Below are positions 9,880 through 37,834 of a stretch of DNA of 64,000 nt, in pieces. Below the pieces are notes generated by a model, which made no database searches, was not told the DNA's origin, and was given only the letters and a program-made list of their open reading frames with translations. Every line of letters begins with the position of its first letter. Within the stretch, counting starts at the first letter, position 1. The stretch lies in the sequence record PV261924.1. One strand, 5' to 3'. The position numbers were made by a program, and so were the translations under genes.

Positions 9880-9886
9880 AGAATAG

Positions 9887-11525: not shown

Positions 11526-11568
11526 TTATGTGGTGTATGTAATAGTGTGGACGTTTGAAGGTGAGTAA

Positions 11569-12450: not shown

Positions 12451-12501
12451 AATTTAGTGTGGTCTCGTACTATAGATGACCTTTCAAGGTGAGTAATTGC
12501 G

Positions 12502-12645
12502 TCAGGGGAGAACTACCCAGACTTTGTTACCATTTTTCATTGTAGTATGGTTATCAACATATTGTTTTGCTCTCGCAATTGTCATACCATGGTTAGTTCT
12601 CAGATAAGATCTTGCTTCTGTGACTGTATTAAACAGTCGCATCAT
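12502..12645 (-). CDS. hypothetical protein, 47 aa (MMRLFNTVTEARSYL...)
   Basis: hand-translated; stop 3 nt before repeat copy 12475. Confidence 0.6.
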   Translation of the reverse strand: MMRLFNTVTEARSYLRTNHGMTIARAKQYVDNHTTMKNGNKVWVVLP

Positions 12646-18266: not shown

Positions 18267-18285
18267 CTGAAGACTTTTTAGTTAT

Positions 18286-18468
18286 TTATTCTATAATAGG
18301 AAGAGGAGAGGGAGCATCATCTGGTAAAGGTGTGACAACCCCACCATCTTCAACCCATTCAAGATACTCCTGATATTCTGTGTTGTTAGGATCTGGAGGA
18401 ATAGAATATTGTGTACCCACAATACCCACTGTACCATATCCGTCTTGTAAGTAATACTGTTTAGTCAT
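18286..18468 (-). CDS. small fibre-partner protein (YQEYLEWVEDG..PLP), probable assembly chaperone
   Basis: ORF track 18286..18513, start MTKQ; paralogous to 19741 and 33644. Confidence 0.65.
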   Translation of the reverse strand: MTKQYYLQDGYGTVGIVGTQYSIPPDPNNTEYQEYLEWVEDGGVVTPLPDDAPSPLPIIE

Positions 18469-19721
18469 AAGTCTGCCTGAAGAACTACTGCTGCGCCATT
18501 GCCCCAAGTACAATTATTATTTACACTTTGACCACTGTTACTAATTCCTGATATATTAAAAACAACAGTATGATTTATAGATTCTTGCTGAATTGCAACA
18601 GTGGTGGCAGAATACCATGCAACTGTTTCAACCAAACAATTCCCTGCAGTATATGAGAAAATTGTTGGAGTTGCTCTCATGTGAACATCTAAGGGTCTTA
18701 CTACAACCGCAGATGTTCCACCACTCCACTGACCATATGCAATTCTACCACCATTCCAACCCTGACAATATCTATAACATATCTGTAAATCTTCACCATA
18801 AGAACGGTGTTCGAATGGCGTGGCTCTAGTACCTACTTCTAATTGAAGTCCAGTTACATACCACTCATTATCAAGACTGTCAGCAAGATTCATACTTGTT
18901 GTTCTATCACTAGTCAAAGTAGTAGTCCAAACTTCGGCTGGAGTTCCTGCATAATTACTACCTGCTGCTAAATAAAATCTAATAGCTAATCCCTGCCCAT
19001 TATCATTATTAATTGTACCACCAGCAGTGTCTCCAGGAATAGTAATTGTTTTATACTCCCAAGTATCTGCAGAATTTATAGTATATGTTGTTGCATATTG
19101 TTTTTCGGCATCATCTCGATAAAACCACAATCCAAAATCACCAGTTTTATTAGATCTAACCCAGAAAGAGATAGTTAGTGATTTTGCTGTAGAACTACCA
19201 TATTCAAGATGTTGTAAATTTTGTGCTTCAATTACCTGTTGAAGCCAAATTTCTTCAGTTCCTGTTGGTGTTGTTACTGATGTACAATCAAATTTAATAC
19301 TATTTGAAAATCCTTCAGGTGCGGTAGATGATTGTGTTACAGTAAACCCAGCAGGACCTTGAGTAAACTTAAACCTGTCAACACAATACCCATTACTAGT
19401 AAAAGATGTGCCCCTCTGACTGACTTGCATGGCACCATTTTGAATCAAATTACGATTACTTAATGGACCAGCAGTAGGATATTGTAAGTCATTAATGTAT
19501 TCAGTGGTAATATTGGTACTACCAATCGTAACTGAACCCTGACCAACTGTCAGAACTCCAGTGATTCTAGCATCTCCATTTACTGTCAGAGCAGTCTGAC
19601 CAACTCCAGTCACAGTCGTAATACCGAGACTGGAGATACCAACAACATTCACACCCTCAGAGAATGTGGGTGATCCAGTTCCTGCCCTATCAGTATATCT
19701 GTCAGCTCTTACTCTAGACAT
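18465..19721 (-). CDS. tail fibre-like protein with carbohydrate-binding-like domain (PLSNRN...TPFEHRSY family)
   Basis: one of four paralogues sharing these motifs. Confidence 0.7.
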   Translation of the reverse strand: MSRVRADRYTDRAGTGSPTFSEGVNVVGISSLGITTVTGVGQTALTVNGDARITGVLTVGQGSVTIGSTNITTEYINDLQYPTAGPLSNRNLIQNGAMQVSQRGTSFTSNGYCVDRFKFTQGPAGFTVTQSSTAPEGFSNSIKFDCTSVTTPTGTEEIWLQQVIEAQNLQHLEYGSSTAKSLTISFWVRSNKTGDFGLWFYRDDAEKQYATTYTINSADTWEYKTITIPGDTAGGTINNDNGQGLAIRFYLAAGSNYAGTPAEVWTTTLTSDRTTSMNLADSLDNEWYVTGLQLEVGTRATPFEHRSYGEDLQICYRYCQGWNGGRIAYGQWSGGTSAVVVRPLDVHMRATPTIFSYTAGNCLVETVAWYSATTVAIQQESINHTVVFNISGISNSGQSVNNNCTWGNGAAVVLQADL

Positions 19722-19740
19722 TGTGAAACTTTTTAGTTAT

Positions 19741-19905
19741 TTATTCAGAGTCAGCAGGTAATGGTGTGTTACCTTCAGCAACCCATTCTAGATATCTCTG
19801 GTATTCGGAGTTGTTCTCGTCATTCGGAACGTAAAATTTAAAATTATTTCTTTGATAAACAACTCCAATTTGCTCCCCTTGATTGTTATTGTGAATTTTA
19901 TACAT
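19741..19905 (-). CDS. small fibre-partner protein (YQRYLEWVAEGNTPLPADSE)
   Basis: ORF track 19741..19929, start MYKI. Confidence 0.65.
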   Translation of the reverse strand: MYKIHNNNQGEQIGVVYQRNNFKFYVPNDENNSEYQRYLEWVAEGNTPLPADSE

Positions 19906-19947
19906 TAATTGAACTCCTTTAATTGTCAATGTAAATTTTGTACATGA

Positions 19948-21159
19948 TCATAATTCTGCACTAAAATCCATTCTTAAGTCATCATTGTATACTTCGAGCC
20001 ATCCTGCATCTCCTGCAGTATATGTAACAACACTACCTCCAGTACCACTTGTATTGTTATAAAAATCCGACAAGTAAACTATAGAGCAATTTGTTCCGCA
20101 TCTTTGTGTACCAAAAGTAGAACCAGTTTGGTTCCAACTAGCCACTCCAGCAGAAAATACACGGATAAATCCAGGTGTTGATGCAGATATATTATTACTA
20201 AAGACGGGTGTTGATCTCATCGTTACTGGATGATGAACGGCTATATATATCTGGTTACTTTGCCAAATTGATCCAGTTCCGATTCCGTCAGTAGTAGCGT
20301 CAGTACCCAAATGGGTATAAAAATACCTCTGACAGCTGGCCAGTTCATCACCATAAGAACGATGTTCGAAAGGCGTGGCTCTTTCGCCGACTTCTAATTG
20401 AACACCAGTAATTGACCACTCGTTGTCAGTGCTATCTGCTAAATTTGTTTGTCCAGCAAAACGATTTGCGGTAGTTGTTTGCCATGTATTTGATTGAAAT
20501 GTTCCACTTGAAAGGGTTGGTCCAGCAGCAAGACACCATTGGACATATAGACCTACACCATTGTCGTTATTAATAGCGTTTGAAGTGTCTCCAACATAAG
20601 TTAAAGTTTTATATTCCCAGGTGTTTGCTGAATTAATTGTATATTTAATGCCATTAAAAGTAGCAGCATCTCCATGATCTAGTTCAACCACATAATCACC
20701 AGTTTTATTTGATTTAACCCAGAATGAGAGTGTAATTTGTTTTGCGGTAGAACTACCATAGTCAAGATGTACTAAATTTTGAGCTTCAACATACTGACTA
20801 AAAAACAAATTATTTGTTCCTGTCAGAGTAGCTTTTGCAGTAGTGCAATCAACTTTAATACTATTTGAAAATCCAGAAGGCAAATTTGATGTAGTATTTG
20901 CTGTTGTCCAAGTACCACACGATGATATATCTAGTCTAAATCTATCAGCTGCCCAAGACGGACCAGAAGTTACTCCAGAATCTCCTGTGCCTCTCTGCGC
21001 CACCTGCATCGCACCGTTGATAATCAGGTTGCGATTACTTAATGGACCAGCAGTAGGATATTGAAGACCACCAACAGTCACTGAACCATCAGTTGCAATA
21101 CCAATACCACCTGCTGCGGTGGAAGGGTTTTCTATATTGTAAACTCTTAAGGTACTCAT
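19948..21159 (-). CDS. tail fibre-like protein (PLSNRN...TPFEHRSY family)
   Basis: paralogue motifs. Confidence 0.7.
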   Translation of the reverse strand: MSTLRVYNIENPSTAAGGIGIATDGSVTVGGLQYPTAGPLSNRNLIINGAMQVAQRGTGDSGVTSGPSWAADRFRLDISSCGTWTTANTTSNLPSGFSNSIKVDCTTAKATLTGTNNLFFSQYVEAQNLVHLDYGSSTAKQITLSFWVKSNKTGDYVVELDHGDAATFNGIKYTINSANTWEYKTLTYVGDTSNAINNDNGVGLYVQWCLAAGPTLSSGTFQSNTWQTTTANRFAGQTNLADSTDNEWSITGVQLEVGERATPFEHRSYGDELASCQRYFYTHLGTDATTDGIGTGSIWQSNQIYIAVHHPVTMRSTPVFSNNISASTPGFIRVFSAGVASWNQTGSTFGTQRCGTNCSIVYLSDFYNNTSGTGGSVVTYTAGDAGWLEVYNDDLRMDFSAEL

Positions 21160-21161
21160 GG

Positions 21162-21482
21162 TTAGTTTCCTGGTTTAGTAGGCCAAACAGGGTTGGCTGG
21201 ATCAGTAGTGTTTGCAGGAAGATCCCGCAAAGCTTGGCGGTAAGCAGCCATCTCAGCGCTCAGGGTACTGTCAGACAGTGCCAGGTAGTCGGTTTCCGCG
21301 ATAAGGCGGTTACGTTCTTGGCGTAGTTCTTTCCATTGATATTCAATCTCAAGTTCAGCAGCTTTGGCAGCAATAGCAGCCTCGTCAACTGCAATTTTAT
21401 TCCCATCAGAATCAAATGCACCGTAAGTGCTACTAACTCTCACAGCGTTTGGATAAAGAAGATGCGTAGCTTTAATTTTCAT
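21162..21482 (-). CDS. phage tail assembly chaperone-like protein
   Basis: LRQERNRLIAETDY...YRQALRDLP...WPTKP signature. Confidence 0.75.
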   Translation of the reverse strand: MKIKATHLLYPNAVRVSSTYGAFDSDGNKIAVDEAAIAAKAAELEIEYQWKELRQERNRLIAETDYLALSDSTLSAEMAAYRQALRDLPANTTDPANPVWPTKPGN

Positions 21483-22066
21483 CCTGCTACCTCCATTAAT
21501 GTAAAATGAGACATGGGACGACCTATCTTGGCAGCATCGGTATCATTTTCAAACATGTTCACAAAAACTGTTTGAGAAGCGGAACTCATGTGTCTAATCT
21601 TTACTCCGTATGTAAACGTACCCGCACTACCTGGAGTGTCTAGAAACATAATATTGAGGGGTTGACTTGAATCTTGTCGGTCAGGGTCAGAATAACCAAC
21701 AGACGAATACCTAAATCTATTTCCAGCCGCGTCAGCAATACCAATGTCTGTACCATCTCTATTCAATACAAATCCGTAAGACGGAGTGGTTGCCATCATA
21801 TGCATCGTACACATGATTAAAACTTTACTATTTGCTGATACTGTAATGGACTGTTCAATAATATTACTACTGAGTGCCAGAGAGGCAAGATTGTAACTCT
21901 CAGCATCTGTCTTTAGACTTTGAACAACCTGCAAAATGTTCCCAGCACGCTCAAGACGATCAAGAGTTCCACTTGCAGTGGGCATCGTCATTGTAGTGAT
22001 ACCAGCAACAGCTGGTGCACTCAACTCTGTATATCCAGATGTGGCACCATTTAACCTAACTGGCAT
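21479..22066 (-). CDS. short tail fibre-like protein (GNILQVVQ family)
   Basis: N-terminal LNGATSGYTELSAPAVAG..T.T.P module; C-terminal HFTLMEVAG. Confidence 0.65.
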   Translation of the reverse strand: MPVRLNGATSGYTELSAPAVAGITTMTMPTASGTLDRLERAGNILQVVQSLKTDAESYNLASLALSSNIIEQSITVSANSKVLIMCTMHMMATTPSYGFVLNRDGTDIGIADAAGNRFRYSSVGYSDPDRQDSSQPLNIMFLDTPGSAGTFTYGVKIRHMSSASQTVFVNMFENDTDAAKIGRPMSHFTLMEVAG

Positions 22067-22098
22067 TTTAATGAACCTCCATTCTTATTATATATTTA

Positions 22099-22242
22099 TT
22101 AGACCCTGTAACACGCACTGATGAAAACATCTGTAGCACCACTTGTGATGTCTGTAACATCAGTGGAAGAGTCACCAACATTCAGGTCGGTAGGTTGCCC
22201 TATAGCAGTTGAAAAACCTGATAATGTACTTGCTCTAGACAT
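22099..22242 (-). pseudogene. 47-codon chimeric remnant (MSRASTLSGFSTAIGQPTDLNVG + DSSTDVTDITSGATDVFISACYRV)
   Basis: 22173-22242 is identical (70 bp) to 32036-32105; 22233-22265 is identical (33 bp) to 19712-19744. Confidence 0.75.
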
Positions 22243-22281
22243 TGTGAAACTTTTTAGTTATTTATCAGTTGGTCGAATGGT

Positions 22282-22935
22282 TTATGTCTTATAAGTAAGT
22301 TCAAAAAATACATAAGATGAAGCACCAACAGCACTAACATTGGTATTACCATAGTTGGCGCCTGCATTTGCTTTTTGATATACTTGCAATGTAGTACTGT
22401 TACTACCTATATGTGGAGCTACTGGCCACGCATCACCCTGCAATCCAGTCCCATACCAATAAATGAGAGTTCCTACAGTTCTATATCCAGTAGTGTTATT
22501 TGATACATATGGTAATCCTTCAATTGTCCATGCCTGACCAGTAGTTCCTGATGTAGTAGATCCATCCATGGCAAACCAAAGATGAACGGTATCACCAACT
22601 TTTGTATATCTAAATGCTTGATTACCACCAGAGTAACTAATCACATTAGTACCACTTTTGATTACAGGAGTCCAACTACCTTCTTCATAATCATCTAGAA
22701 GTTCAGATGTAGATGACCCTGAACCATCAGATGTGGCAGAGAAGTCAATACCTTGACCATCTAGAAATGCTAAATTACCACTACTATTAAACGTTGCAGC
22801 TACACTACCACCAGTTACAAATTCAATTTCATTTGTGCCAGGTCTGATACCAGTATCTGAATCACCACCTTGAAAACCAGGTGCTGCTGTAGTATTTGTT
22901 CCGCTAATTCTTACAGTCATTATACTACACTCCAA
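22282..22935 (-). CDS. tail fibre-like protein (DDYEEGSWTP family)
   Basis: ORF track; motif present. Confidence 0.7.
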   Translation of the reverse strand: MECSIMTVRISGTNTTAAPGFQGGDSDTGIRPGTNEIEFVTGGSVAATFNSSGNLAFLDGQGIDFSATSDGSGSSTSELLDDYEEGSWTPVIKSGTNVISYSGGNQAFRYTKVGDTVHLWFAMDGSTTSGTTGQAWTIEGLPYVSNNTTGYRTVGTLIYWYGTGLQGDAWPVAPHIGSNSTTLQVYQKANAGANYGNTNVSAVGASSYVFFELTYKT

Positions 22936-23225
22936 ACTGAACCTGAATTGACTGTGACAGTGGCACCAGATGCAACATTAATAGGACCAGCTGTCATGGC
23001 ATTACGCCCTGTGGTGATACTGTAACTGGTAGTCACTGTCAAATCATTCTCATAAAAAATTCTATCAGTACCAGCACCAACTGCACCGACTAAATCACGA
23101 CCATCATACTTAAATGCTGTAGCAGTTACAACACCAGAGACATTGATACCTCCCCCAATCCCAAGAGTGATATTAGGGGAGGAAGCATCTAAATGCTCTA
23201 GGTTATTAGTCTTTAGAATACTCAT
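22920..23225 (-). CDS. small virion/tail protein (FYEND...SAGP.T motif)
   Basis: ORF track; C-terminus similar to that of 27185..27814. Confidence 0.65.
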   Translation of the reverse strand: MSILKTNNLEHLDASSPNITLGIGGGINVSGVVTATAFKYDGRDLVGAVGAGTDRIFYENDLTVTTSYSITTGRNAMTAGPINVASGATVTVNSGSVWSVV

Positions 23226-23248
23226 CTCAATATCTTTTTAGGTATTTA

Positions 23249-23536
23249 TCAGAGTGCGTCTCTGGTAGCAATCAGGTGTGCCTTATATGCATCCTTGACT
23301 GCTTGTGTCCATGCAGCGTTACAAATTGCTTGAACGTCTGCACCTTCACCACTGATGTCTGTATCTACCCAGTTGTCGTCTGCATCAACTGTACCAGACA
23401 TCAGACAATGACGATGGAAAGTACGTGCAATCTCTGTACCATCTCTCTCAACGATATCAGCTCTACGTACTTGAACTGCTTTAAATCTACCGACAACTTC
23501 AATCTTGTCGTTTTCGCTTCTTTCAGAAAGTGCCAT
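23249..23536 (-). CDS. fibre-associated small protein (DKIEVVG...VQVR...FHRH)
   Basis: ORF track; lies next to a DDYEEG-family gene. Confidence 0.7.
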   Translation of the reverse strand: MALSERSENDKIEVVGRFKAVQVRRADIVERDGTEIARTFHRHCLMSGTVDADDNWVDTDISGEGADVQAICNAAWTQAVKDAYKAHLIATRDAL

Positions 23537-23580
23537 TAGGATAATCCTCCGAATTAAACAGGGTTAGGCGTAAGTATTTA

Positions 23581-24525
23581 TTATGCTTCTGTATAATAAT
23601 TAAGTGTAAAAATGATAGAGCCACTACCTGTCATCTCTATTCCTTGTAATGGATCCCAACCCACATTGTCCCCACACTGATAAAATGTCATGTCATTACC
23701 GCCAACATAAGTTACAAGATACGTCTTACTTGCTCCATTATCAAGATTTACATTATTAATCATCGCGGTACCCACAGCTTCAGGAGTGTCACCAACTCCT
23801 TGAGATGCTGCAAATGGAAGTCTAATAGTTATATTTGCCGCAGCCGGGGTGTCTAATCCAGAAATTCTTCCCCATACAGTAACTTTTCTTCCGAGTTTTA
23901 CATATCTAGTGCTACCACTATTAACGCCATTACCACCCGTAGCGAGTGTAGCAGTCCAAGTACCTTGCTCATAATCATCTAAAAGGTGTGCAGATGCTGT
24001 ATCAGAACTACCAGCACCAGTATTCTGAAAATCAATACCTTGATGGTTAATAGTCAGATACTGTGTTGCATCTGTAGAGTCTTGTACTCTGATTGTACCA
24101 CCAACCGCAACATTAACACCTGCAGAAACTGTGGTGGTATTGACACCTACACCACCAGTTGAAGTTATACGAAGTCTTTCTGCGTCTGCAGTTTCATCAT
24201 AAACATTTAAAATTGTACCACTATTTCCTATAGTAAAGGAACGAGCATTAGCACCAGTTTTATCCAATCCTAATCTGGATATCGTTCCATCACTTACTTT
24301 AAGGTTTGTTCCATTAGCAGGAAAAGTTATCGTATTGATACCAACATTACCACTACTATCCTCAACCATTGAGGAATGAGTTACAATACCAGCTGTGGTA
24401 CTGTTCTTATAGAACTGATTAGCACTACCATTCCCATCAGGTAGTGTGATAGTATTATCACCAGCTACAGCTGGAGCGTTGATATCAACGGCTCCAGAAG
24501 TTTGTCCTCGTAAACTCAGTCCCAT
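23581..24525 (-). CDS. tail fibre-like protein (DDYEQGTW family)
   Basis: ORF track; motifs present. Confidence 0.7.
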   Translation of the reverse strand: MGLSLRGQTSGAVDINAPAVAGDNTITLPDGNGSANQFYKNSTTAGIVTHSSMVEDSSGNVGINTITFPANGTNLKVSDGTISRLGLDKTGANARSFTIGNSGTILNVYDETADAERLRITSTGGVGVNTTTVSAGVNVAVGGTIRVQDSTDATQYLTINHQGIDFQNTGAGSSDTASAHLLDDYEQGTWTATLATGGNGVNSGSTRYVKLGRKVTVWGRISGLDTPAAANITIRLPFAASQGVGDTPEAVGTAMINNVNLDNGASKTYLVTYVGGNDMTFYQCGDNVGWDPLQGIEMTGSGSIIFTLNYYTEA

Positions 24526-24549
24526 GGGATTATACTTTTTAGTTATTTA

Positions 24550-25899
24550 TCAGGCAGTTGATGAAGCGGTCAATGAATGCTGTGAACCTGGTACTGCATT
24601 TTGAATAATGACTTCATAGAAGAATGACACACCATCATCACCTGTTGGATTAGAAATATCAATACTATATCCATTTCCGCCAGAATTATTAAATGCATAG
24701 TGACTTGCTGCTGAGTAAGTATATGCAAAAGGTGTGGTTACTGTTGCACTATCAGAGGATGTACCACTGGAGTTTGTAAATACTCTACACATAAACTGTG
24801 CAGCAGGGTGATTGTTTTCTGTGTTAGATGCTGTCCAAGAACCTGTAGCATTGATTGTAATCATTGCACTAGTTCTATCAGTTCCTACAAAAGTAAATCG
24901 AGTCAGTTGTCCAGAATTCAATGTATCTCTGACATAATACTTTTTAATTGCACCACCAGCAATCTCCTCATATCTATAGACTTGGTTTTGTGTAATAGAA
25001 CTATCGCCTAACTGTAAAGTGGAACCAGTTGATACATTGATGTTACCACCTGCTGTGATACGAAGTTTTTCTGATCCATCAACTTTAAATCTAATATGGC
25101 TATCGGGACCCTGATTACCCTCATCAGCAGCAATCACTAATTCATCTGCATCACCATCTATTCCAATAAAATTATTTCTTAAAAAACCAGATTTACTAAT
25201 TGTTATTCGTGATTGGGCGTTTGTAGTTGTATCAATATGAAGACCAGTTTGTGGATCATCTGTCCCGATGCCAACATAACCATTTGAATTAACTCTAAGA
25301 GCCTCAGTTCCACCAGCAGATATTGCAACTTGACCAGCAGCAGGGAAGAATACCCCAGTAGTTGTATCAACACCAACTAAACCAGGTGTTGCTTCTGTAC
25401 CATAACCAACTGATACTGCTGCACCAACAGGAACTGCAAGACCATAAGGGAACTTAGGTGCCTTTACACCACTCTTATCTGTAATATTATCTACTCTTAC
25501 TTTACCTTCACCACTAGCAAGAATACCAGGAGTATCTACATCTGTACCAATACCTAAAATGTCAGGAATAAAGTCATCACCATCGGCTACAATCAGGTCT
25601 GCATCACCTTGTAGGACAATGTTGGTATATTGTGTATATGCTGCTGAAGCAGATGCTGGTGGGTCTACAGTGATGGTAGAACCAATGGTCAGGTTTGCAT
25701 CAGTATAATATATCTTATTCAACGGACTGTTTAGGTCATCTGGTAACAATGAAGTACCAAGGCCACCAGGAGTACCAGTCAGGTTTGAGCCGTCACCATA
25801 GTATTCAATTGCAGTTACTACCCCCAACCTGACATTAACAGGATTTTGAGGGTTAGTAACCGCAGAACCAAAACCAGCAAGATTACGAGCTCTTGACAT
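24550..25899 (-). CDS. tail fibre-like protein, 449 aa
   Basis: GYVGIGTDDP, DGSEKLRI repeats. Confidence 0.7.
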   Translation of the reverse strand: MSRARNLAGFGSAVTNPQNPVNVRLGVVTAIEYYGDGSNLTGTPGGLGTSLLPDDLNSPLNKIYYTDANLTIGSTITVDPPASASAAYTQYTNIVLQGDADLIVADGDDFIPDILGIGTDVDTPGILASGEGKVRVDNITDKSGVKAPKFPYGLAVPVGAAVSVGYGTEATPGLVGVDTTTGVFFPAAGQVAISAGGTEALRVNSNGYVGIGTDDPQTGLHIDTTTNAQSRITISKSGFLRNNFIGIDGDADELVIAADEGNQGPDSHIRFKVDGSEKLRITAGGNINVSTGSTLQLGDSSITQNQVYRYEEIAGGAIKKYYVRDTLNSGQLTRFTFVGTDRTSAMITINATGSWTASNTENNHPAAQFMCRVFTNSSGTSSDSATVTTPFAYTYSAASHYAFNNSGGNGYSIDISNPTGDDGVSFFYEVIIQNAVPGSQHSLTASSTA

Positions 25900-25922
25900 T
25901 TTTTATACTTTTTAGTTATTTA

Positions 25923-27173: not shown

Positions 27174-27184
27174 TTACTTACTCC

Positions 27185-27814: not shown

Positions 27815-27837
27815 TGTAAAACCTTTTTAGTTATTTA

Positions 27838-30800
27838 TTATTTAGCGTTGGCAGTCTTGAATGGTGATTCAGCGAAGGCAGCGAAGATGTAAGTTGCTCC
27901 ACTATTATTTCCACCAAATCCCGATGCTTGTCTTACCTTAAAACCATTGGATAAGAAATCTACATCATGAGCATTATCAGTTTCCCTATCATTGGTATTT
28001 GCGAATAATACTGCAGTGATTGGGTTTATTGTTTTTCTTGAATTATCAAAAATATACCAATTTGTTGCAAGTGTTGAAGACTTAATCATAACCCATGCCG
28101 GTTTAAACCCACAATACACAAAAGGTCCATCAGTACTTGCATTACCAATATAACTTCCAAACTTACTGTAACCTTCTATTTCTGTCCAGCAGTAAGCAAC
28201 AATGTCCTGATTACCCGTACCTGCTGCCTGACCAGTTGTTGTGGAATTTGCAAGACCAAAAGTGTCACTTCCTACAGAAGGCCAGAAAACATATGCTGCT
28301 TCAGAACTGTTTAAAGTGACGGAATTTTTACCAGCATCATTAATACCAGAATGATAAACTCTCCAGTTGACAGCAGCACTTCTATTTTTCAGGATAATCA
28401 TATTTGGAGTCTTATTTAAACCATGCCCAACTGTTTCTGTTGCAGTATTGCTTCCAGTTGAAGTATATGTTACAATACTAACCCCAGCATCCTGATTTAC
28501 AGAAACTACAGAATCAATTGTTCCATCTGTGTTTACTGATGTGGTGCCTGCTCCTACTTTCCAACACCAGGCGACAAAGTTAGTTCCAGATTCATTAATA
28601 CCAATATTACTACCACCAGTTCCATAAACCATACTAAAACCATCATTATTAAACGAACTTATGCCTCCAAAATAATCACTAGAAGCACCTTCTACTGCTG
28701 ATGAATTGGGCAATAAGAAATTATCTTTTCCAGCACCACGAACAGAATCAAAGGCACGATGATTATATGCGGAAGGACTTCTTGACTTAATCCAAACCAA
28801 GTCAGGAGTAAATCCAACACCTACAATACTTCTACCACTATTACCATCACCAGTCCAAAGCACAGTCTTAAAGTAATCACCAGGATCAGAAATCGCAGGA
28901 GTTGGTAAGTTGTCCTCACATAATGCTAGGAATCCACTTGGAGGTTGATATCTAAATTCACCTTTTCCATTGGAATCAGCATTTCTTTGTGTTGATGCTG
29001 CTGAAACTTGACCAGAGAATGTTGGGTTTTGACCAAAGTTCCAATTGACCGTGGTTTGAGTACCACCTGACTCTCTGTAAGAAAATCTATAATCTCTCTC
29101 TGGAGTAGTGGAGATACCAGTAGCCATTGCGGTTCCACTAGTATCAACTACTTCATTTTTTGCAATCCAAACACTTCCAATGTCTGCGTCATATGCAATA
29201 GCAAGAATGTCACCAGTACTAAATGCACTTAAATTACCATTGTCTGTACCACTGGTAGCAACTGTACCATCCCACATTTGAACACTTACATTGTTAGTTC
29301 CAACTGTCGCCGCGTCGTGGTCTGCATCACTTACAAGTATATTGCCTCTGGCTTGTTGGTCAACATCTCTTACCTCAACATACCATTTTCCAGAGGTAAA
29401 TCCAAATGTTGAGAACACATGTTTATCATTGGCGGTAGTTCCTGATACCTGTAAATTTCCTCTTGTCAGGGTTCCAGCTACAGCATTAGCTAATGGATTC
29501 AAAGTCGCAAAGTTATTTGCAGTACAATCAGATACTGCTCTCCAGGTTGCAATACCTACGGGTGTATAAGGTTTCGGAACATCAAAACCACCCTTGTATT
29601 TTGCTACACCTTTATAAACACGGAGGTCTTGTATATCACCAGTAAATTCGTCATTACTTGTGCCGTCCCAAGTTCCTATTTTAAATGTATCAGCAGTATT
29701 TGTATATAAAGTAGTTGGGGCATTTGTTAATATACCTACCACCACTCCATTTAGATATACTCTTAAATCATTTCCTTCTTTTTCTCCAACTACATGTGAC
29801 CATTGGTTAGTTGTCAAAATACTAACTGGTGAACTTACAACATGTTGAGTCGCAGCTGTTCCATCACCAGATACGATAAAATTAAGATCACCACTTGAAC
29901 CGTGATAAAGTAACCAACTTCTTCTATCAACACCATCGTAATTAAAAATTCCAGCAATTCCACCACCATCAGTTAAACTTGTGGGATTTATCCAAGCCTC
30001 TACCGTATAGTCATCAGATCCTGGTTGGAAGTCTGGATCATTGGCGGGTGATGTAAGATAGTCACCAGTCCCATCAAAGGTCATAGCACTTCCATAATAA
30101 TTCCCAAGTTCATAACCCACACCAGCGTCACCAACTGCTGTAAGTGTCTTATTAGTTCCACTACCTTTGATATCAGCAGAGTAATCTCTTGGTGCGTCTT
30201 CTTGTTTGACTACAACGTTGTCAAATATAGCAGTCGCAATTTCATTTGCATTTACTCTCAAAATAACATATAATGTTGTGGATGTTGCAGTAAATGAAAT
30301 ATATCTATTTCCATATCCACTATTTGATGGTCGCGCCGCAAAACTTGCTAAAGGATTGTTAGAATAACTCAAATAATATGCAATACTTGATGCGGTTCCA
30401 CCAACAAGATCAACACCTACAGTATATCTTTTACCAACTTCTACTGTTACTAACTGATATGCATATACTGGAGGATCACTAGTATCAGTATTACTTACTA
30501 CTAATTGACCCCCGACAACGGCCATAGAACCTTCGGTAACATCATTAATAGTCCAACCAGTAGTTCCATTATCAAAAGATCCATTAGTAACTAAATTAGC
30601 ACCAGTCGCAGTGGAAATACCAGGAACAGCAAGAACCAAATTAGCAGCATAAGAGTCACTTCTCAACTGACTGACATATGCATCAGAAGTTGTAGGAGCA
30701 CCATTACGTGGTTGTGGTAGGTCTTCTCCTTTCAGAGTGATAATACTGTTAGGAGTGGTGTGGAAGTCAGCACCGAAGTTGGAACTATCATTTATAGGAA

Positions 30801-31485
30801 GATAGAAACCATTGACACCAAATCCACCATTATTGTTGATAGAATTCTTAATTACTGATGGTTTCTTTGGAACCCATTGTCCTGGTCTGAAATCAGTGGA
30901 TTGTGTAGTGCCAGCAGAGACATATCCATTACCATCTTTATAGAAACCAAACACATCTGGTGTGAGTGCTTGACCGTCTACAAAAAACCAATCAAAATAT
31001 TCTTGTGATGGACCAGATGGAGCATATGGAACACCACCAACTATAACAGTACCAATGGTATGCATCACTTGTGTATTTACAGAACCATCATAGTTCAGAC
31101 TAGGATAACTACCAGTTAGACTATCTTGTAATGTACCATTTACATATAATTTTAATCTTTCTTGAGCAACACTTTTGGTAACATCCCATTTAAGTAATAT
31201 ATGCATCCAACTTCCAACATCCCTAAACACATTTGTAGTGTTTAATTCATGATCTACACCACCTTGATTTCTACCAAGTTGTATTGTTCCATCACCATTA
31301 AAATTTGCAACAGACTGATATGGTGATGAATCTTGTGTTGTATAAAAATTGAAAAAAGCACCAGAAGTATTATCTGGATTTTGATTTGCTGCTACAGCAT
31401 TCCTTTTAATCCAAAAAGATAAGGTCCAAGTATGTCTGTTGCCAGTGCTTGTAGGAGTTCTATGAAAATATTCGTTTACAGCCAT
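27838..31485 (-). CDS. large multi-domain adhesin (LamG/ConA-like, CBM-like and SPRY-like domains)
   Basis: WTLSFWIKR, NLVTNGSFD, YTVEAWINP...WSHVV, GKWYVEV, PDLVWIKSR motifs. Confidence 0.75.
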   Translation of the reverse strand: MAVNEYFHRTPTSTGNRHTWTLSFWIKRNAVAANQNPDNTSGAFFNFYTTQDSSPYQSVANFNGDGTIQLGRNQGGVDHELNTTNVFRDVGSWMHILLKWDVTKSVAQERLKLYVNGTLQDSLTGSYPSLNYDGSVNTQVMHTIGTVIVGGVPYAPSGPSQEYFDWFFVDGQALTPDVFGFYKDGNGYVSAGTTQSTDFRPGQWVPKKPSVIKNSINNNGGFGVNGFYLPINDSSNFGADFHTTPNSIITLKGEDLPQPRNGAPTTSDAYVSQLRSDSYAANLVLAVPGISTATGANLVTNGSFDNGTTGWTINDVTEGSMAVVGGQLVVSNTDTSDPPVYAYQLVTVEVGKRYTVGVDLVGGTASSIAYYLSYSNNPLASFAARPSNSGYGNRYISFTATSTTLYVILRVNANEIATAIFDNVVVKQEDAPRDYSADIKGSGTNKTLTAVGDAGVGYELGNYYGSAMTFDGTGDYLTSPANDPDFQPGSDDYTVEAWINPTSLTDGGGIAGIFNYDGVDRRSWLLYHGSSGDLNFIVSGDGTAATQHVVSSPVSILTTNQWSHVVGEKEGNDLRVYLNGVVVGILTNAPTTLYTNTADTFKIGTWDGTSNDEFTGDIQDLRVYKGVAKYKGGFDVPKPYTPVGIATWRAVSDCTANNFATLNPLANAVAGTLTRGNLQVSGTTANDKHVFSTFGFTSGKWYVEVRDVDQQARGNILVSDADHDAATVGTNNVSVQMWDGTVATSGTDNGNLSAFSTGDILAIAYDADIGSVWIAKNEVVDTSGTAMATGISTTPERDYRFSYRESGGTQTTVNWNFGQNPTFSGQVSAASTQRNADSNGKGEFRYQPPSGFLALCEDNLPTPAISDPGDYFKTVLWTGDGNSGRSIVGVGFTPDLVWIKSRSPSAYNHRAFDSVRGAGKDNFLLPNSSAVEGASSDYFGGISSFNNDGFSMVYGTGGSNIGINESGTNFVAWCWKVGAGTTSVNTDGTIDSVVSVNQDAGVSIVTYTSTGSNTATETVGHGLNKTPNMIILKNRSAAVNWRVYHSGINDAGKNSVTLNSSEAAYVFWPSVGSDTFGLANSTTTGQAAGTGNQDIVAYCWTEIEGYSKFGSYIGNASTDGPFVYCGFKPAWVMIKSSTLATNWYIFDNSRKTINPITAVLFANTNDRETDNAHDVDFLSNGFKVRQASGFGGNNSGATYIFAAFAESPFKTANAK

Positions 31486-31496
31486 TATGCTTTACC

Positions 31497-32105
31497 TCAA
31501 CCTAAAATTACTGAACCTGATGGGAAGTAATCAGTGATGATTTCTACCCAGTTTGTACCGTCGTATATCTCTAACGCCTTACTTGTACTATTGAATCTAA
31601 TGAAACCCTCCACACCTGTGGGTCTCTGTGCTGTTGTACCCTTTGGAAGTCCAATAGCATCAGTGTTCTGTGAAACATCAAGACTGACTTCAGGTCCAGT
31701 GCTTCCAATACCTACCGAACTACCTGCACCAGTGACATGAATACCACCACGCGTGGTGATGATACCAAGAGAATCAACGTTGGTGACATCCTCATAAGTC
31801 AGTGTACCAGCAACTGATACATTACCTAAAAGAGTTCTGGTGTCTACACTGAGGAATGTACCAACACCAAGTGGACTATGAATACCACTTGAACTGATGG
31901 TGGTAACACCGACTAATGTGGAACCAATACTTACAGTGTCACTGAATGTTGCGATACCAGTGATACTTAAGTTGTTGAATTCATAAGTATTTGATGCTGT
32001 GATGTTATCAGCGTCAATACGAGTTGCGGTAACCACACCAACATTCAGGTCGGTAGGTTGCCCTATAGCAGTTGAAAAACCTGATAATGTACTTGCTCTA
32101 GACAT
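31497..32105 (-). CDS. tail fibre-like protein, 202 aa
   Basis: YEDVTNVDS module; C-terminal LPKGTTAQRP...G.IRFNST...EIYDGTNW. Confidence 0.7.
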   Translation of the reverse strand: MSRASTLSGFSTAIGQPTDLNVGVVTATRIDADNITASNTYEFNNLSITGIATFSDTVSIGSTLVGVTTISSSGIHSPLGVGTFLSVDTRTLLGNVSVAGTLTYEDVTNVDSLGIITTRGGIHVTGAGSSVGIGSTGPEVSLDVSQNTDAIGLPKGTTAQRPTGVEGFIRFNSTSKALEIYDGTNWVEIITDYFPSGSVILG

Positions 32106-32126
32106 CTTGGTGTGTTTTTAGTTATT

Positions 32127-32187
32127 TATTCAGAGTCAACAGGTATGGTTAGTTGCTTTCAACTGCCAGTTTGGAGTTGCCTCCAGA
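32127..32187 (-). pseudogene. eroded remnant of a YLEWV..PLPADSE partner gene
   Basis: GAA AGC AAC TAA CCA TA- CCT GTT GAC TCT GAA TAA aligns with GAA GGT AAC ACA CCA TTA CCT GCT GAC TCT GAA TAA of 19741..19905. Confidence 0.6.
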
Positions 32188-33621
32188 TCAAAGTTCGGCA
32201 TCGAGTTGTAGGCTAGTGAATGTCAACCAATAAACCGCATTATCATTTACTGAAACGTTACTTACTGTGTAATCCAATGTTGGCTTAAGTTCCGAAAAAT
32301 TGCCGACGGAAAATGTGGCGCTACCAAAACTTATGTTCGTTGCGTCATACCTATATATCTGAGAAATAGTATTGTTCCTAAACACGGGAGTGCCCCTCAT
32401 CGAAGATGCTAGTGAAAGAGGAAACACTAAAGTTGTTGGTGAAGATGCGGCACCGAAAAGTCTTCCCAGCTGCCCAATCTGTTGAAAATATCTCTGACAC
32501 TTATCAAGCATATCACTATAACTCCGATGTTCAAAAGGCGTGGCTCTGGTGCCTACTTCTAATTGAACACCAGTGAGGAAAAATTCATCATCATTTGCAG
32601 AACCAATAGCAAGGTTATCTGAATTACGATTATTATTAACAAGTGCTCTCCACCCTCCTTGTGACCCTCCTGTAAAGGTAGAACCACTATTTAACCACCA
32701 AATAATGTCTAAACCACGACCACTATCATTATTAATAAGACCAGAAGTATCTCCAGGAATGGTAATTACTTTTTGCTCCCAAGTGTTTGTAGCATTAATC
32801 GTGTAACTTGCACTATACTGTCTATCACTGTTATCTTCTTGAATTAATTCAAGAGTGCCAGTACCAGTTTTAGTTGACCTTACCCAAAAGGATAAAGTCA
32901 TTGTTTTTGCATTTGAAGTCCCATAGTCAAGATGTTGTACATCTTGACCCTCAATGAAGTATACAATTTTGACATTATCAGTTGCACCTGGAGATGCTTG
33001 TCCTGCGGTACAAGTTAATCTCAATGAATTACGGAAACGTTCAGTTGAACCACTTTCATAAGTATCACCTTGAGAGTTAGTCATCCTGTCAGATGTCCAA
33101 GTTCCCATAGAAACATCAAGTCTAAAACGATCGGCGGTGTAATAACCAGTGCCAGAATTAATGGATGATACAGTATTACCGCGTTGTGCAACCTGCATCG
33201 CACCATTAATAACCATATTACGATTACTTAATGGTCCAGCAGAAGGATAACCTAGGTCATTGATACTACTAATATATGCCGTTGTTACACCAAGTGTAGC
33301 ACCAACACCCGCAATATGAACATTACCTCCAGTAACTTCAATACTTCCAATGTATGCTGTTCCTACGCCGATTGTAGAACCTGCACCTGCAATATGAACA
33401 TTACCTCCTGTAACTTCAATACCATTACGTGCAGTAATGACACCAACAGAATCAATATTAGTTACATCTTCATAAGTCAGTGTACCACCAATTGATACAT
33501 CACCACTAAAGGATGCACCACCAGTATAAGTAGTGAAACCAGTGACAGTCAGACCCTTGGGACAATCAGGTGCACCAGTATCAAAATGATTTACAATCTC
33601 ATTTACTTGGATCTTAGACAT
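32188..33621 (-). CDS. tail fibre-like protein (PLSNRN...TPFEHRSY family)
   Basis: paralogue motifs; internal 26-aa tandem duplication. Confidence 0.7.
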   Translation of the reverse strand: MSKIQVNEIVNHFDTGAPDCPKGLTVTGFTTYTGGASFSGDVSIGGTLTYEDVTNIDSVGVITARNGIEVTGGNVHIAGAGSTIGVGTAYIGSIEVTGGNVHIAGVGATLGVTTAYISSINDLGYPSAGPLSNRNMVINGAMQVAQRGNTVSSINSGTGYYTADRFRLDVSMGTWTSDRMTNSQGDTYESGSTERFRNSLRLTCTAGQASPGATDNVKIVYFIEGQDVQHLDYGTSNAKTMTLSFWVRSTKTGTGTLELIQEDNSDRQYSASYTINATNTWEQKVITIPGDTSGLINNDSGRGLDIIWWLNSGSTFTGGSQGGWRALVNNNRNSDNLAIGSANDDEFFLTGVQLEVGTRATPFEHRSYSDMLDKCQRYFQQIGQLGRLFGAASSPTTLVFPLSLASSMRGTPVFRNNTISQIYRYDATNISFGSATFSVGNFSELKPTLDYTVSNVSVNDNAVYWLTFTSLQLDAEL

Positions 33622-33643
33622 ATCACGTAAACTTTTTAGTTAT

Positions 33644-33811
33644 TTATTCAGAGTCAGTAGGTAATGGTGTGTTACCTTCTTCAACCCATTCAAGGTATTT
33701 TTGGTAGTCAGTATTGGCAGTATCAAGTGGAATAGTTCCGATACCTTGTCCATCGATTGCAATCAACTTTTTTGTAAAAAAATCGTAAATTCCAGTGTAA
33801 ATCATAGTCAT
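33644..33811 (-). CDS. small fibre-partner protein (YQKYLEWVEEGNTPLPTDSE)
   Basis: ORF track 33644..33829; ATGA coupling at 33811. Confidence 0.65.
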   Translation of the reverse strand: MTMIYTGIYDFFTKKLIAIDGQGIGTIPLDTANTDYQKYLEWVEEGNTPLPTDSE

Positions 33812-35205
33812 AACTCCGCAGAAATCCAAATGTCTTCTGTTGTAAAACCAAACAAAAACGACGTTCCTAGGTTATTGTTTGCATTGTTCGTATTTTTGTA
33901 GTTTGGATTTAAAATGTGGGTAGAGGAGCCGCTAGTAACAATAAAATTAAGTTCTGCGTTTGTTTCACCTCCATAATTTACATTTAGCATACCTGTTGAG
34001 ATTGTAGCTGATCCATCACTAGCTCTTGTTGTAGGTGCAGCCCTCATTCTTGAAATAACTATAGATCCTTCTAACCGTGCATCTGAGTATACTACACCAT
34101 TTGCACTTCTCGTGACCGATACGCCATTAGGCAGCATTTGGAAATAGCGCATACACTTTTGAAGATCATCCCCATAGCTCCGACGTTCAAATGGTGTACT
34201 TTTAGTTCCTACTTCTACCTGCAATCCAGTAACATAAAAGTCATTATTAAGCGTATCTGACCAAGTATTAGTCATGCCAGGTGTTCCAAATAAGTTTGAA
34301 TTATGCCAAGTGTTTGCTGTACCATGAAAAGTAGTACCAACATCAATACCCATCAGTATTTCTAGACCTTTCCCGTTTGTACTTTCAAAAGTTCCTGAAT
34401 CTGCCCCAGGGATTGTAAAAGTTTTATACTCCCAAGTATTTGCAGCTTGAATTGAATACTCTCCAGTGTAGTTTTTAGTGGCTGTGTTGTTTCTAAAACA
34501 AAAACCATAAGTGCCAGCAACACTAGATTTTACCCAAAAAGAAACGGCTACTGTTTTACAATTTGCGTTTCCATATTCAAGCTGATTTATATCATATCCT
34601 TCAAAAGAATATCCAAGAAGCACGTAGCCAAAAGCAGGTGTTCCTGCAGCGTTAGCGCTGACTCTCAATTTATATGAATATTGAAATCCTTGGCCTGCAG
34701 GTACATCCGTGTCTTGTGATTGATCAACGCTAAAAGTATTAAAAGTGCTGGAGTACGTTTTAAATCTGTCAATTAAGTATTCCCCGTCAACGGTTACAGT
34801 TACTGGTCCTGCTCCTCTTTGTGCTATTGCCATCGCACCGTTGTGGACCAAATTACGATTACTTAATGGACCAGTAGTAGGAAAACCTAAGTCATTAATA
34901 CTATCAACACCATAGACAGAACCAATACCTGCTGTGGATACACCAGTGATACTTGAACTACCTGATGTTCCATCAATAGTAACTGAACCAGTACCAATTG
35001 TTAGAATACCAGTGATTCTTGCATCACCACCAACGACCAACTCTGTTGTGGCACCACCAACTACTGTATTACTAAATGTTGATACCCCAGTTACAGATAA
35101 ACCACTACCAACATGTAAGTCACTTGAAATGGTAGTCACACCCGTCAGCACTGGTCCGTGAGAACCAGTCCTACCTGTAATAGAATTTACATTAATTGCT
35201 GACAT
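33808..35205 (-). CDS. tail fibre-like protein (PLSNRN...TPFERRSY family)
   Basis: paralogue motifs. Confidence 0.7.
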   Translation of the reverse strand: MSAINVNSITGRTGSHGPVLTGVTTISSDLHVGSGLSVTGVSTFSNTVVGGATTELVVGGDARITGILTIGTGSVTIDGTSGSSSITGVSTAGIGSVYGVDSINDLGFPTTGPLSNRNLVHNGAMAIAQRGAGPVTVTVDGEYLIDRFKTYSSTFNTFSVDQSQDTDVPAGQGFQYSYKLRVSANAAGTPAFGYVLLGYSFEGYDINQLEYGNANCKTVAVSFWVKSSVAGTYGFCFRNNTATKNYTGEYSIQAANTWEYKTFTIPGADSGTFESTNGKGLEILMGIDVGTTFHGTANTWHNSNLFGTPGMTNTWSDTLNNDFYVTGLQVEVGTKSTPFERRSYGDDLQKCMRYFQMLPNGVSVTRSANGVVYSDARLEGSIVISRMRAAPTTRASDGSATISTGMLNVNYGGETNAELNFIVTSGSSTHILNPNYKNTNNANNNLGTSFLFGFTTEDIWISAEL

Positions 35206-35230
35206 TGTTTATATCTTTTAAAGGTATTTA

Positions 35231-35863
35231 TCAGAGGTCACCCAACTGATATAAATCAGTCACGAGTGTTTTACCAAGACCAACAGTAATTGTAGCACCA
35301 GTGCTGACAATCATTCTTGGTTCCTGGACTACAACATATGTATTATCTGCACCTGCATTTGTCGTATTCAGGTCAATTGTCTCATTGACATAGACAGTTG
35401 CATTGATGTAACTAAATGGACTTTCTGTGTTACTAGGATAACGAATAGCAGTACCAACACCACCACCAGCACCACTGACTTCTACGTTAATGGTGTCACC
35501 AGATTGTGAGAATGTAGTTGCAGTGCCAACAAAGTTAAGTGTATTTGCTTCACCTACAGATACACCATTGGAGTGAATACCAATGGTGGCTTGTGCTGCA
35601 TTGAATGCTTTATATGTAACAGCCTCGATAATGTCACCAGGCTGTGGATGTGTAATGAATGAGAAGTTATTACCATCACCAGCAGTGAAGTCAATACCTC
35701 TAATCTGTTTTGCACCGTTCAGATAGACATCAAAATACTGAAGATCGTATCCTGATGCAAAGTTATAGGTAGTTTGAATACCTGTGGGTTGATAGACCTG
35801 ACGTGAAACAGTTACCGCTGAGTCACTAGGAGATCTTCCGATGTAACCGTTATTTCCAATCAT
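35231..35863 (-). CDS. tail/baseplate-associated protein, 210 aa
   Basis: GYIGR...VYLNG.KQ...DFTA.DG module. Confidence 0.7.
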   Translation of the reverse strand: MIGNNGYIGRSPSDSAVTVSRQVYQPTGIQTTYNFASGYDLQYFDVYLNGAKQIRGIDFTAGDGNNFSFITHPQPGDIIEAVTYKAFNAAQATIGIHSNGVSVGEANTLNFVGTATTFSQSGDTINVEVSGAGGGVGTAIRYPSNTESPFSYINATVYVNETIDLNTTNAGADNTYVVVQEPRMIVSTGATITVGLGKTLVTDLYQLGDL

Positions 35864-36390
35864 CAGGCAACTCCTGCAAGGACACTCAGATTGACATCAA
35901 CAGCTGTTGCAGTATTACAATATACCCTGACTTCTTCGTTCTGTCTCAGGATTGTCTTACCTGCATCACTGATAACAAATGAACTACCCTGTGGAACAGG
36001 AATGTTATTTGCAATATTAACAAAAGTATTTCCAACACCAACTTCTACAAAGATGTTGATATTGTTATCGGACAGGTTACAGAAAGTACCACCGACCAGA
36101 ATTGACTTAGATGATGCAGTGTATGCAGTGGTGACACCCAAGAAACTTACGGACTGATTAGTCGCAGAAGAAGTATTGGTTGAAGTCTTGTCAAGTCTGA
36201 CCTGACCTGCATCAATATAAGCAACTTTTGCACCACCTCTGAAGTGAGTGGTTTTAACCATGTCACCAACAGCAACACCAGCAGTGGAGATACCAGTAAT
36301 GATGGTAACACCAGCTCCAATACTTCCGCTTGAACTAGTGGTCACAATACCAGCAGCTCTTGTCAGTGAATTTGTAAATGACTCCGCCAT
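35863..36390 (-). CDS. virion structural protein, 175 aa
   Basis: ORF track; late operon context. Confidence 0.7.
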   Translation of the reverse strand: MAESFTNSLTRAAGIVTTSSSGSIGAGVTIITGISTAGVAVGDMVKTTHFRGGAKVAYIDAGQVRLDKTSTNTSSATNQSVSFLGVTTAYTASSKSILVGGTFCNLSDNNINIFVEVGVGNTFVNIANNIPVPQGSSFVISDAGKTILRQNEEVRVYCNTATAVDVNLSVLAGVA

Positions 36391-36415
36391 TGTATTAATA
36401 CTTTTTAGTTATTTA

Positions 36416-37834
36416 TCAAAGTCCACCAAGAGCAATGACCATTGCTAATGAAGGAACAGAGTTATTATTGACAGTCAGTTCACCATCAATATTAGTGTCT
36501 CCTCTGACATCTAGAGTATATAAGGGGTTTGTAGTCCCGATGCCCACCATTGTAGTGGTGGCTGTTGATACAACAGTGAATGAAGAGTTAGCAAGACCTA
36601 CCTGAAGAGCATTCAGTGGATCATCCGTACCAATACCAAGAGTTGTAATGTGTGCTGTTGGTGCAGTGACAACACCAGCAAATGATGCATTACCTGATGG
36701 TAGGAGTGTGATACCAATACCAGTACCACCACTATAATCATAACCGACGTGAATACCTTTTCTTGCAGTAACAAAACCGAGAGAGTCAATGTTCTCTACA
36801 TCTTCATAAATCAGGGTGCCACCAATGGTGACATTACCTGTGAATGTTGCAGATGCACCTACAATATCAGTGACATATGCAGTAACAACACCGATTGACT
36901 CAAGACCAGTGACGATTCCGAGAGTAGATATACCAGTAACAACTAATGAATCTGCAACAACATTTGCTGTATTGGCAAGACCAGTAATTGTGACATTACC
37001 TGTTGAGCTGTCAACAGAAATATTATCACCCGCTGTAATTGAGGTGACAATACCTGATAATTCGGTGCCTCTACCATAGTAAGTTACTACACCAACAGAA
37101 CCACCAACAGTTGCACCGACACCCGATGATGTAATCTTAAAGTCTGCGAATGAAGATATACCTACATCAACATTCAGTTGAGTGACTGATGCAATACCAC
37201 CAATTACATTGGTTGCAATTCCAGCTTGTGCTACATAAGTCTGTTGTGAGACTGTAATTGTAGCAATACCACCGTTATTATTACCAGTTGCTACTACATC
37301 TAAACCTCTAAAATCAAGACCACTAAATGTGGTACCAAGACCTACTGAACTTCCTTCATCGAATATTAAAATACCTTCAATAGCACCTGCAGGTGCAACA
37401 GGTAACCATTGGGGAGGTTGTCCTACTCCTCTCGAATAGAGTCCATATCCAGTTATTCCATTCTCAAATGCAGAAGTGATACCAGGTTGTGCCTGATATA
37501 ATATCTGTCCTGCAGTACCACCGTAAATATTCGTTGCATTGGTGGCACTTGTGATTCCAGTCAGTCCCAGACCAGAACCATAATATTCGTTGGCTGTAAC
37601 GACACCAACGTTAATTACTGTCGTATTATTTACATCTACCGCATCAGTCGGTGTTGAAGTACCGATGCCGATACTTCCTGAAATATAAACATTCCCTCTT
37701 ACATCCAGATCCTGCATTGCAGCATCTGTATTCAAGCCGATACGTCCGACTACTTCTAGTGATGTCTTTTCCTCACTAAAAGAACTGACACCAACTTTTA
37801 AATTAAGACGGTCGTTACTTCCGTATCTTGCCAT
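36416..37834 (-). CDS. tail fibre-like protein, 472 aa
   Basis: Gly/Thr/Val-rich fibre repeats; YEDVENIDS module. Confidence 0.7.
   Translation of the reverse strand: MARYGSNDRLNLKVGVSSFSEEKTSLEVVGRIGLNTDAAMQDLDVRGNVYISGSIGIGTSTPTDAVDVNNTTVINVGVVTANEYYGSGLGLTGITSATNATNIYGGTAGQILYQAQPGITSAFENGITGYGLYSRGVGQPPQWLPVAPAGAIEGILIFDEGSSVGLGTTFSGLDFRGLDVVATGNNNGGIATITVSQQTYVAQAGIATNVIGGIASVTQLNVDVGISSFADFKITSSGVGATVGGSVGVVTYYGRGTELSGIVTSITAGDNISVDSSTGNVTITGLANTANVVADSLVVTGISTLGIVTGLESIGVVTAYVTDIVGASATFTGNVTIGGTLIYEDVENIDSLGFVTARKGIHVGYDYSGGTGIGITLLPSGNASFAGVVTAPTAHITTLGIGTDDPLNALQVGLANSSFTVVSTATTTMVGIGTTNPLYTLDVRGDTNIDGELTVNNNSVPSLAMVIALGGL

Follow-up and report, generated by a model that had tools for sequence, protein, structure and literature searches.

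What does a promoter-like sequence do when it is repeated, letter for letter, at the gene junctions of a variable tail-fibre locus? This question is raised by a 64,000-nucleotide stretch of sequence record PV261924.1 (the window; positions are counted from its first letter), in which the 15-bp word ATAAATAACTAAAAA recurs between 18275 and 36416. The window belongs to Synechococcus phage RN05-S, which positions 18000-37000 match at 100% and at the same coordinates (megablast). RN05-S is a T4-like cyanomyovirus with a 206,548-bp genome and Synechococcus MW02 as its isolation host; its relatives include RB11-B (97% identity over 59% of 18000-37000), S-B05, and S-B43. The 18-kb stretch that carries the copies is a variable array of tail-fibre genes, made up of about eleven word-headed units that hold one to three genes each, all encoded on the minus strand, and the word is accordingly written in minus-strand orientation. 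Most products of 17376-37834 fall into tail-fibre families of PHROGs, together with a tail-fibre-assembly-like protein. Among ten array proteins, Pfam recognised only Peptidase_S74, Laminin_G_3, and DUF7483: one protein carries the Peptidase_S74 intramolecular chaperone and another is a LamG/DUF7483 protein. The fibre assignment therefore relies on PHROGs, whose tail-fibre matches suggest an adhesin function for the array products.

The answer favoured here, with reasonable if limited confidence, is that the word serves both as a late-promoter subclass of fibre and baseplate genes and as a recombination seam at which whole units are shuffled, i.e., as a late-gene analogue of the PeSL cassettes of T4-type phages.

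A probable late promoter with a conserved extension

The word is present in nine exact copies, all on the minus strand, against an expectation of 0.00 in 100 shuffles, and the remaining 188 kb of the RN05-S genome contain no further exact copy. With two variant copies added, a one-mismatch word at 23235 (C at position 8) and a degenerate word with three mismatches at 35217, a repeated promoter motif is thus clustered within 18 kb of a variable region. The plus strand has another one-mismatch copy, with G as its last base, at 66049, 5' of the baseplate tail tube cap gene. An earlier note on this DNA, made from the letters alone, had described an identical word that usually takes in the upstream gene's stop codon and stands shortly before a start, often MSR, and this description was borne out. 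The upstream stop overlaps the word in seven of the nine copies; an ATG follows every copy at 8-11 nt (16-19 nt from the promoter box), and the N-termini begin with MSR (five), MSK (one), or MA/MG (three). The word carries TAA in all three frames, each of which serves as a stop codon, and 95 of 137 upstream frames terminate inside it. The idea of an invariable three-frame stop was only partly sustained, as position 8 is A, C, or T in relatives and the middle TAA is thereby lost. Neither the word nor its 13-nt core was matched in the literature searched. In S-B43, a GC-specific cytosine modification has been described (PMC12783734); its action on the word was ruled out, since the word contains no GC dinucleotide.

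In all nine copies, positions 1-7 read ATAAATA, which corresponds to the cyanomyovirus late-promoter core NATAAATA (PMC2984593). The T4 late promoter TATAAATA consists of an 8-bp box at -13 to -6, beyond which only A+T richness is conserved (PMC1524935, PMC2988020); the earlier note was therefore right that the 8 nt beyond the core are dispensable for promoters of this type. The genes g55, g33, and g45 were found in all cyanomyoviruses sequenced by then (PMC2984593), and a gp33-like late-transcription coactivator is annotated at 70393-70662 of RN05-S. By analogy with T4, the word would span -12 to +3 and its extension -5 to +3, with transcription starting in the A-run and a leader of about 11-14 nt. 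The identical core, the location on the coding strand upstream of structural genes, and a gp33-like coactivator are shared with the known T4-type and cyanomyovirus late promoter. What differs is that -5 to +3 is fixed in a subset of sites here, whereas the known promoter is only A+T-rich beyond the box. The eight extension positions hold no information in 29 other late-promoter-like sites of RN05-S or in 158 such sites of unrelated IMG/VR loci, and the generic late promoters of RN05-S head the portal, scaffold, and head-tail adaptor genes as well as other fibres. Since these generic sites lack the extension, it is a genuine addition present in only some late promoters.

The same feature recurs in other phages. 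Allowing at most one mismatch, the class ATAAATA-N-CTAAAAA has 12 members in S-SRM01, 5 in S-SCSM1, and 2 in S-T4, and the copies whose downstream genes were read lie mostly 5' of tandem fibre-like genes. Syn9 has two exact words, 5' of fibre gp34 and of the gp10-like connector gp102. In IMG/VR, an ATG within 15 nt opens a frame of at least 60 codons after 96 of 126 exact words, compared with 15 of 117 copies of a composition-matched 15-mer in which the core was kept and the extension shuffled; six multi-copy loci were seen for the word and one for this control. Among the IMG/VR products headed by the word are fibres, gp48, baseplate wedge proteins, and gp9/gp10-like connectors. Conservation is strictest in the ATAAATA core, and the 15 bp remain fixed before proteins that have diverged beyond alignment; the extension is therefore under selection. 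On these sequence comparisons, we infer that the 8-nt extension marks a subclass of late promoters that several cyanophage genera use for their fibre and baseplate genes. Given that it also heads baseplate and fibre genes elsewhere, the word is not special to the array, and its primary role is probably regulatory. As a separate observation, several IMG/VR loci (L042, L051, L055, L067, L091, L104, and others) encode members of one protein family (140-470 aa) characterised by the motif ..ELR.LQEAY..VY at the N-terminus; upstream of these genes stand, in this order, a terminator hairpin, a T-run, and the exact word.

Permuted units in related phages

Gene order was compared among the loci encoding the MAIGN protein (IMG/VR L294-L301), together with L065 and S-B43. 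In the orders below, genes are written by N-terminus or by coordinate, a slash stands for the word, and genes within a unit are linked by hyphens. All relatives compared share the proximal block 42012-38184-37834 / MAESF-35863. In RN05-S it is followed by MSKIQ / MSRAST-LamG / MAIGN-27173 / MSRARN / MGLSL-23536 / MSILK. The order in L296 is MSRARN / MGLSL-23536 / MSTLK / MSRAS-LamG / 154 aa / MAIGN-like-27173, and that in L301 is MSTLK / MAIGN-27173 / MSKIQ / MTRARG / MAGLNL / MSRASR. Unit order is permuted in L297 too. In L295, MSAINV is joined to MAIGN and MSTLK to MSKIQ. In L065, through loss of a block, MSKIQ is joined directly to MSRARN, at a junction that combines the upstream flank of one RN05-S word with the downstream flank of another. 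An extra 155-aa unit occurs in S-B43, L294, and L296, and in S-B43 it lies between two words with nothing else added. Thus, insertions, deletions, and replacements in S-B43, L065, L294, L295, L296, L297, and L301 are bounded by the word, and relatives differ by exactly word-bounded changes of units.

The flanks of individual copies follow the same pattern. Across ten genomes, MAIGN is preceded by at least six unrelated upstream flanks, each ending at the first base of the word with no filler DNA, and its leader, ggtt(t)taca, is constant in every one. The C8 variant stays with the MS[IT]LK N-terminus in seven genomes, and in general the leader sequence within 1-11 nt of the word is particular to each junction and stable among orthologues. 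In all four isolates, the gene downstream of each word is retained while the upstream flank varies, with hypervariability concentrated in the C-terminal end of the preceding gene. RN05-S itself carries a rearrangement scar: the mini-gene at 22099-22265 is a chimera with the leader of word 8, and its first 70 coding nt match 32036-32105, where the MSRAST gene starts, at 100% identity. Two further observations concern the modules themselves. In L294-L301, an N-terminal module MS[IT]LKTNN.EHLDAS is fused to at least five C-terminal bodies (244-455 aa), and in L298-L300 the MAIGN N-terminus heads giant proteins of 1002-1867 aa.

For metagenomes, the contigs of four studies were compared with 6,000 letters of the window. 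Coverage was low precisely over the hypervariable C-terminal segments, and contigs had loose ends at 25923 and 22265. Some contigs connect 22701 with 24004, so that the N-terminal portion of one gene continues into the C-terminal portion of a second. Backward joints are also present and are ambiguous as a sign of mini-circles.

How might the word act as a seam? The same 15 bp stand at both ends of every unit, bringing a three-frame TAA and the promoter of the next gene. Recombination of word with word, within a genome or between co-infecting phages, would then delete, add, or reorder whole units, leaving the upstream frame closed and the downstream gene expressed; because the TAA codons in use and the promoter both lie in the word, any such exchange would restore both. 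We infer that the crossover falls inside the 15-bp word and is driven by UvsX-type recombination of the phage itself. The RN05-S genome contains a UvsX/RecA homologue, and a genome-wide search for RVT_1 (PF00078) and tyrosine integrase (PF00589), in which serine recombinases were not searched, gave no match; the earlier note had seen no reverse transcriptase or recombinase in the window. The combination fits general recombination. A second, finer layer of variation arises through swaps of C-terminal domains at conserved motifs within genes.

Composition of the array and its surroundings

The units, with the word copies or other sites that head them, are listed in Table 1. Baseplate wedge and connector genes lie upstream of 38 kb.

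Table 1. Word copies, variants, and headed units of the RN05-S array, from high to low positions of the window (ORF, open reading frame)
Element	Position	Strand	Unit	Relatives and metagenomes
Word 1	36402-36416	minus	Overlaps TGA stop of 36416-37834; heads MAESF (35863-36390, 175 aa) and 35231-35863 (210 aa)	Junction unchanged in 9 of 9 relatives examined
Degenerate word ATAAATACCTTTAAA	35217-35231	minus	MSAINV fibre (33808-35205, 465 aa) and small ORF 33644-33805	
Word 2	33633-33647	minus	TAA at positions 2-4 is the small-ORF stop; heads MSKIQ fibre (32188-33621, 477 aa)	Upstream neighbour of MSKIQ is the small ORF, MSTLK, or a 27173-like gene
Word 3	32115-32129	minus	MSRAST (31497-32105, 202 aa) and LamG/DUF7483 protein (27838-31485, 1215 aa)	S-B05 identity block terminates at 32129
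Word 4	27824-27838	minus	MAIGN (27185-27814, 209 aa) and Peptidase_S74-chaperone fibre (25923-27173, 416 aa)	
Word 5	25909-25923	minus	MSRARN fibre-like gene (24550-25899, 449 aa)	Identity of RB11-B, S-B05, and S-B43 stops at 25923-25928; metagenome contigs break at 25923
Word 6	24536-24550	minus	MGLSL (23581-24525, 314 aa) and 23249-23536 (95 aa)	
C8 variant word	23235-23249	minus	MSILK (22920-23225, 101 aa) and 22282-22920 (212 aa)	
Word 7 (22251-22265) with 47-aa chimeric mini-gene	22099-22265	minus		Absent from RB11-B
Generic late promoter ATAAATA (22093-22099), not the word	19741-22099	minus	21479-22066, assembly-like 21162-21482, fibre 19948-21159, small ORF 19741-19905	
Word 8	19730-19744	minus	MSRVRAD fibre (18465-19721, 418 aa) and small ORF 18286-18468	
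Word 9	18275-18289	minus	Last fibre-like gene of the array, MSRIRAN (17376-18266, 296 aa)	Word and N-terminus: 107 bp 99% identical in S-T4, where the last gene is a 36-aa remnant

The three small ORFs in Table 1 are paralogues of 53-60 aa (phrog_20370) that follow fibre genes and end inside the word; they may encode fibre chaperones or assembly factors. They also explain the longer identity that the earlier note had seen between 19726-19777 and 33630-33681: the similarity is real and extends over 88 nt at 88% (19726-19813 versus 33629-33716), which is the 3' end of these ORFs. A repeat encoding LDDYEEGSWTP lies inside three fibre-like genes, at 17751-17783, 22666-22698, and 23950-23982. In S-T4, the 36-aa remnant (L141:2240-2422) joins a fibre N-terminus with a PLPADE tail; a strong terminator-like hairpin comes after it, where the array ends. 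In S-B05 (MK799832.1) and S-B43 (MN018232.1), parts of the array occur at two or three distant places on opposite strands; this is either a real rearrangement or an assembly error at repeated junctions and was not used as evidence. Outside the array, the early region of the window (962-12516) contains at least 12 copies of a 40-55-nt repeat at a spacing of about 0.6-2 kb, which on the minus strand resembles a sigma-70-type promoter with a conserved extension. Beyond the window, a large sugar-modification cluster of about 17 kb (89085-106083 of RN05-S) comprises genes for glycosyltransferases, epimerases/dehydratases, aminotransferases, and methyltransferases.

Seam, signal, or both

Several points weigh against reading the word as a seam. 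The nearest relative, RB11-B, is fully collinear with RN05-S, and only 1 of its 14 identity breakpoints lies at a word (25923), the others being intragenic; joints in the four metagenome studies, likewise, fall mostly at intragenic motifs, e.g., the LDDYEEGSWTP-coding repeat. For UvsX-type homologous recombination, 15 bp is short, and some junctions share 30 to about 90 nt of flanking homology, which is possibly the real substrate. IMG/VR contigs that share more than 30 nt at their junctions could be chimeric, and selection in favour of promoter-keeping arrangements could suffice to leave the surviving breakpoints at promoters. As to the promoter, ACG-2014e and S-PM2 have no copies of the word, their fibre genes included, and the word is thus not required for fibre expression in general. 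Mapped late start sites of cyanophages were sought in the literature with nothing usable found, and 6% of the sampled sequence words were present in one RNA run; promoter use and start site are predictions.

These points bear directly on the proposal of the earlier note, which had seen in the array a repertoire of about 15 receptor-binding or decoration modules driven by homologous recombination. The permuted, word-bounded units of L065, L294-L301, and S-B43 speak for this proposal; the intragenic position of most breakpoints in close relatives and metagenomes, and the presence of the word outside arrays, do not. The note had named fixed gene order and content across relatives as the contrary outcome. 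RB11-B is indeed collinear, but L065, L294-L301, and S-B43 show permutations with unit-sized gains and losses; the proposal is not refuted and has partial support.

The most serious competitor, which we consider somewhat unlikely, is that the word is a co-regulation signal only, i.e., a late promoter with a short leader for tail-tip genes, and has no role in recombination. Units would then move by recombination elsewhere or by illegitimate joins, and breakpoints at the word would reflect survivorship, because only arrangements with intact stop, promoter, and start persist. In accordance with this explanation, the word class heads single-copy baseplate orthologues (gp48, gp10-like) in many phages that have no array, close relatives differ chiefly by intragenic swaps, and the generic late promoter at 22093-22099 is likewise a breakpoint. 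However, mere survivorship fits poorly with the upstream flanks of MAIGN, which differ wholly up to base 1 of the word in at least six contexts without filler, with the 155-aa unit inserted cleanly between two words, and with the composite junction of L065.

An action on RNA is improbable. Here, the word would be an A/U-rich translation enhancer, a coupling signal, or a processing site in a long late transcript. The ATG keeps a narrow distance from the word (4-15 nt for 76% of the copies in IMG/VR), no Shine-Dalgarno sequence was found in the leaders after the word, and no terminator-like hairpin was found at any word junction of the array, which makes read-through transcripts between units likely. 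Against this, the first seven bases of the word are the exact late-promoter core and its most strictly kept part.

Still less probable is that the identical copies result from recent tandem duplication or gene conversion and that the extension is functionless in itself. In favour of this, the genes after the word encode paralogous N-termini (MSR...), and at some words the identity reaches beyond the 15 bp. However, the 15 bp are kept in other genera before proteins that can no longer be aligned; the leaders are junction-specific yet stable in orthologues, the C8 variant stays uncorrected in seven genomes, and the shuffled control does not share the position before genes. This explanation is largely refuted by the conservation across genera. 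Finally, a target of a site-specific recombinase or retro-element system, integron-like or diversity-generating, is highly improbable despite the cassette-like layout with a repeated boundary, since the genome-wide search, which did not extend to serine recombinases, found neither RVT_1 nor a tyrosine integrase domain, and the word has no dyad symmetry.

The reading as both promoter subclass and seam is best appreciated by comparison with known systems. In T4-type phages, PeSLs combine a sigma-70-type early promoter with a terminator stem-loop and flank mostly small genes of unknown function (PMC2839356, PMC4122927). PeSL mini-circles have been demonstrated (Arbiol et al. 2010, PMC2839356), and the 2014 survey of PeSLs does not mention late promoters or cyanophages (Comeau et al., PMC4122927). 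In both cases, a short repeated promoter motif in a variable region of a T4-like genome bounds insertions, deletions, and replacements between relatives, and general recombination by the phage is proposed. In contrast to PeSLs, which are longer and pair an early promoter with a hairpin, the RN05-S motif is a late promoter of 15 bp that lacks a hairpin, borders virion fibre genes, and overlaps the upstream stop. The mosaic tail-fibre loci of T-even phages (gp37/gp38) likewise exchange host-range modules with conserved motifs within genes as joints, a part played here by the LDDYEEGSWTP-coding repeat; in the T-even phages, swaps reportedly occur at coding motifs in one or two genes (PMC3157838), whereas here whole units move as well and the word is their common boundary. 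Integron gene cassettes also form same-orientation arrays with a repeated boundary, but here no tyrosine integrase domain and no attC-type imperfect inverted repeat were found, and each unit has its own promoter.

A more specific version can be entertained tentatively. The word would then be a 'late PeSL', combining a gp55-type promoter subclass, whose -5 to +3 segment is read by some determinant, with an in-register crossover site at which co-infecting cyanophages would exchange whole receptor-binding units. The reader of the extension may be a contact of the host RNA polymerase core, a gp55 variant, or a phage factor. If this version is true, a separate regulon of fibre and baseplate genes would exist across marine T4-like phages.

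For the biology of these phages, the favoured reading of the word as promoter subclass and seam would have several consequences. If it is true, the PeSL concept would no longer be confined to early accessory genes but would cover late virion genes as well, and T4-type late promoters would not be uniform, with the conserved -5 to +3 element defining a subclass. In metagenomes of cyanophages, fibre gene units can be located and bounded easily with the word as an anchor. Tail fibres decide which strains of Synechococcus and Prochlorococcus a cyanophage kills; therefore, the exchange of fibre genes shapes host range in virus-host pairs that are among the most abundant of the ocean, and the word would explain how whole receptor-binding units can move between phages without loss of function.

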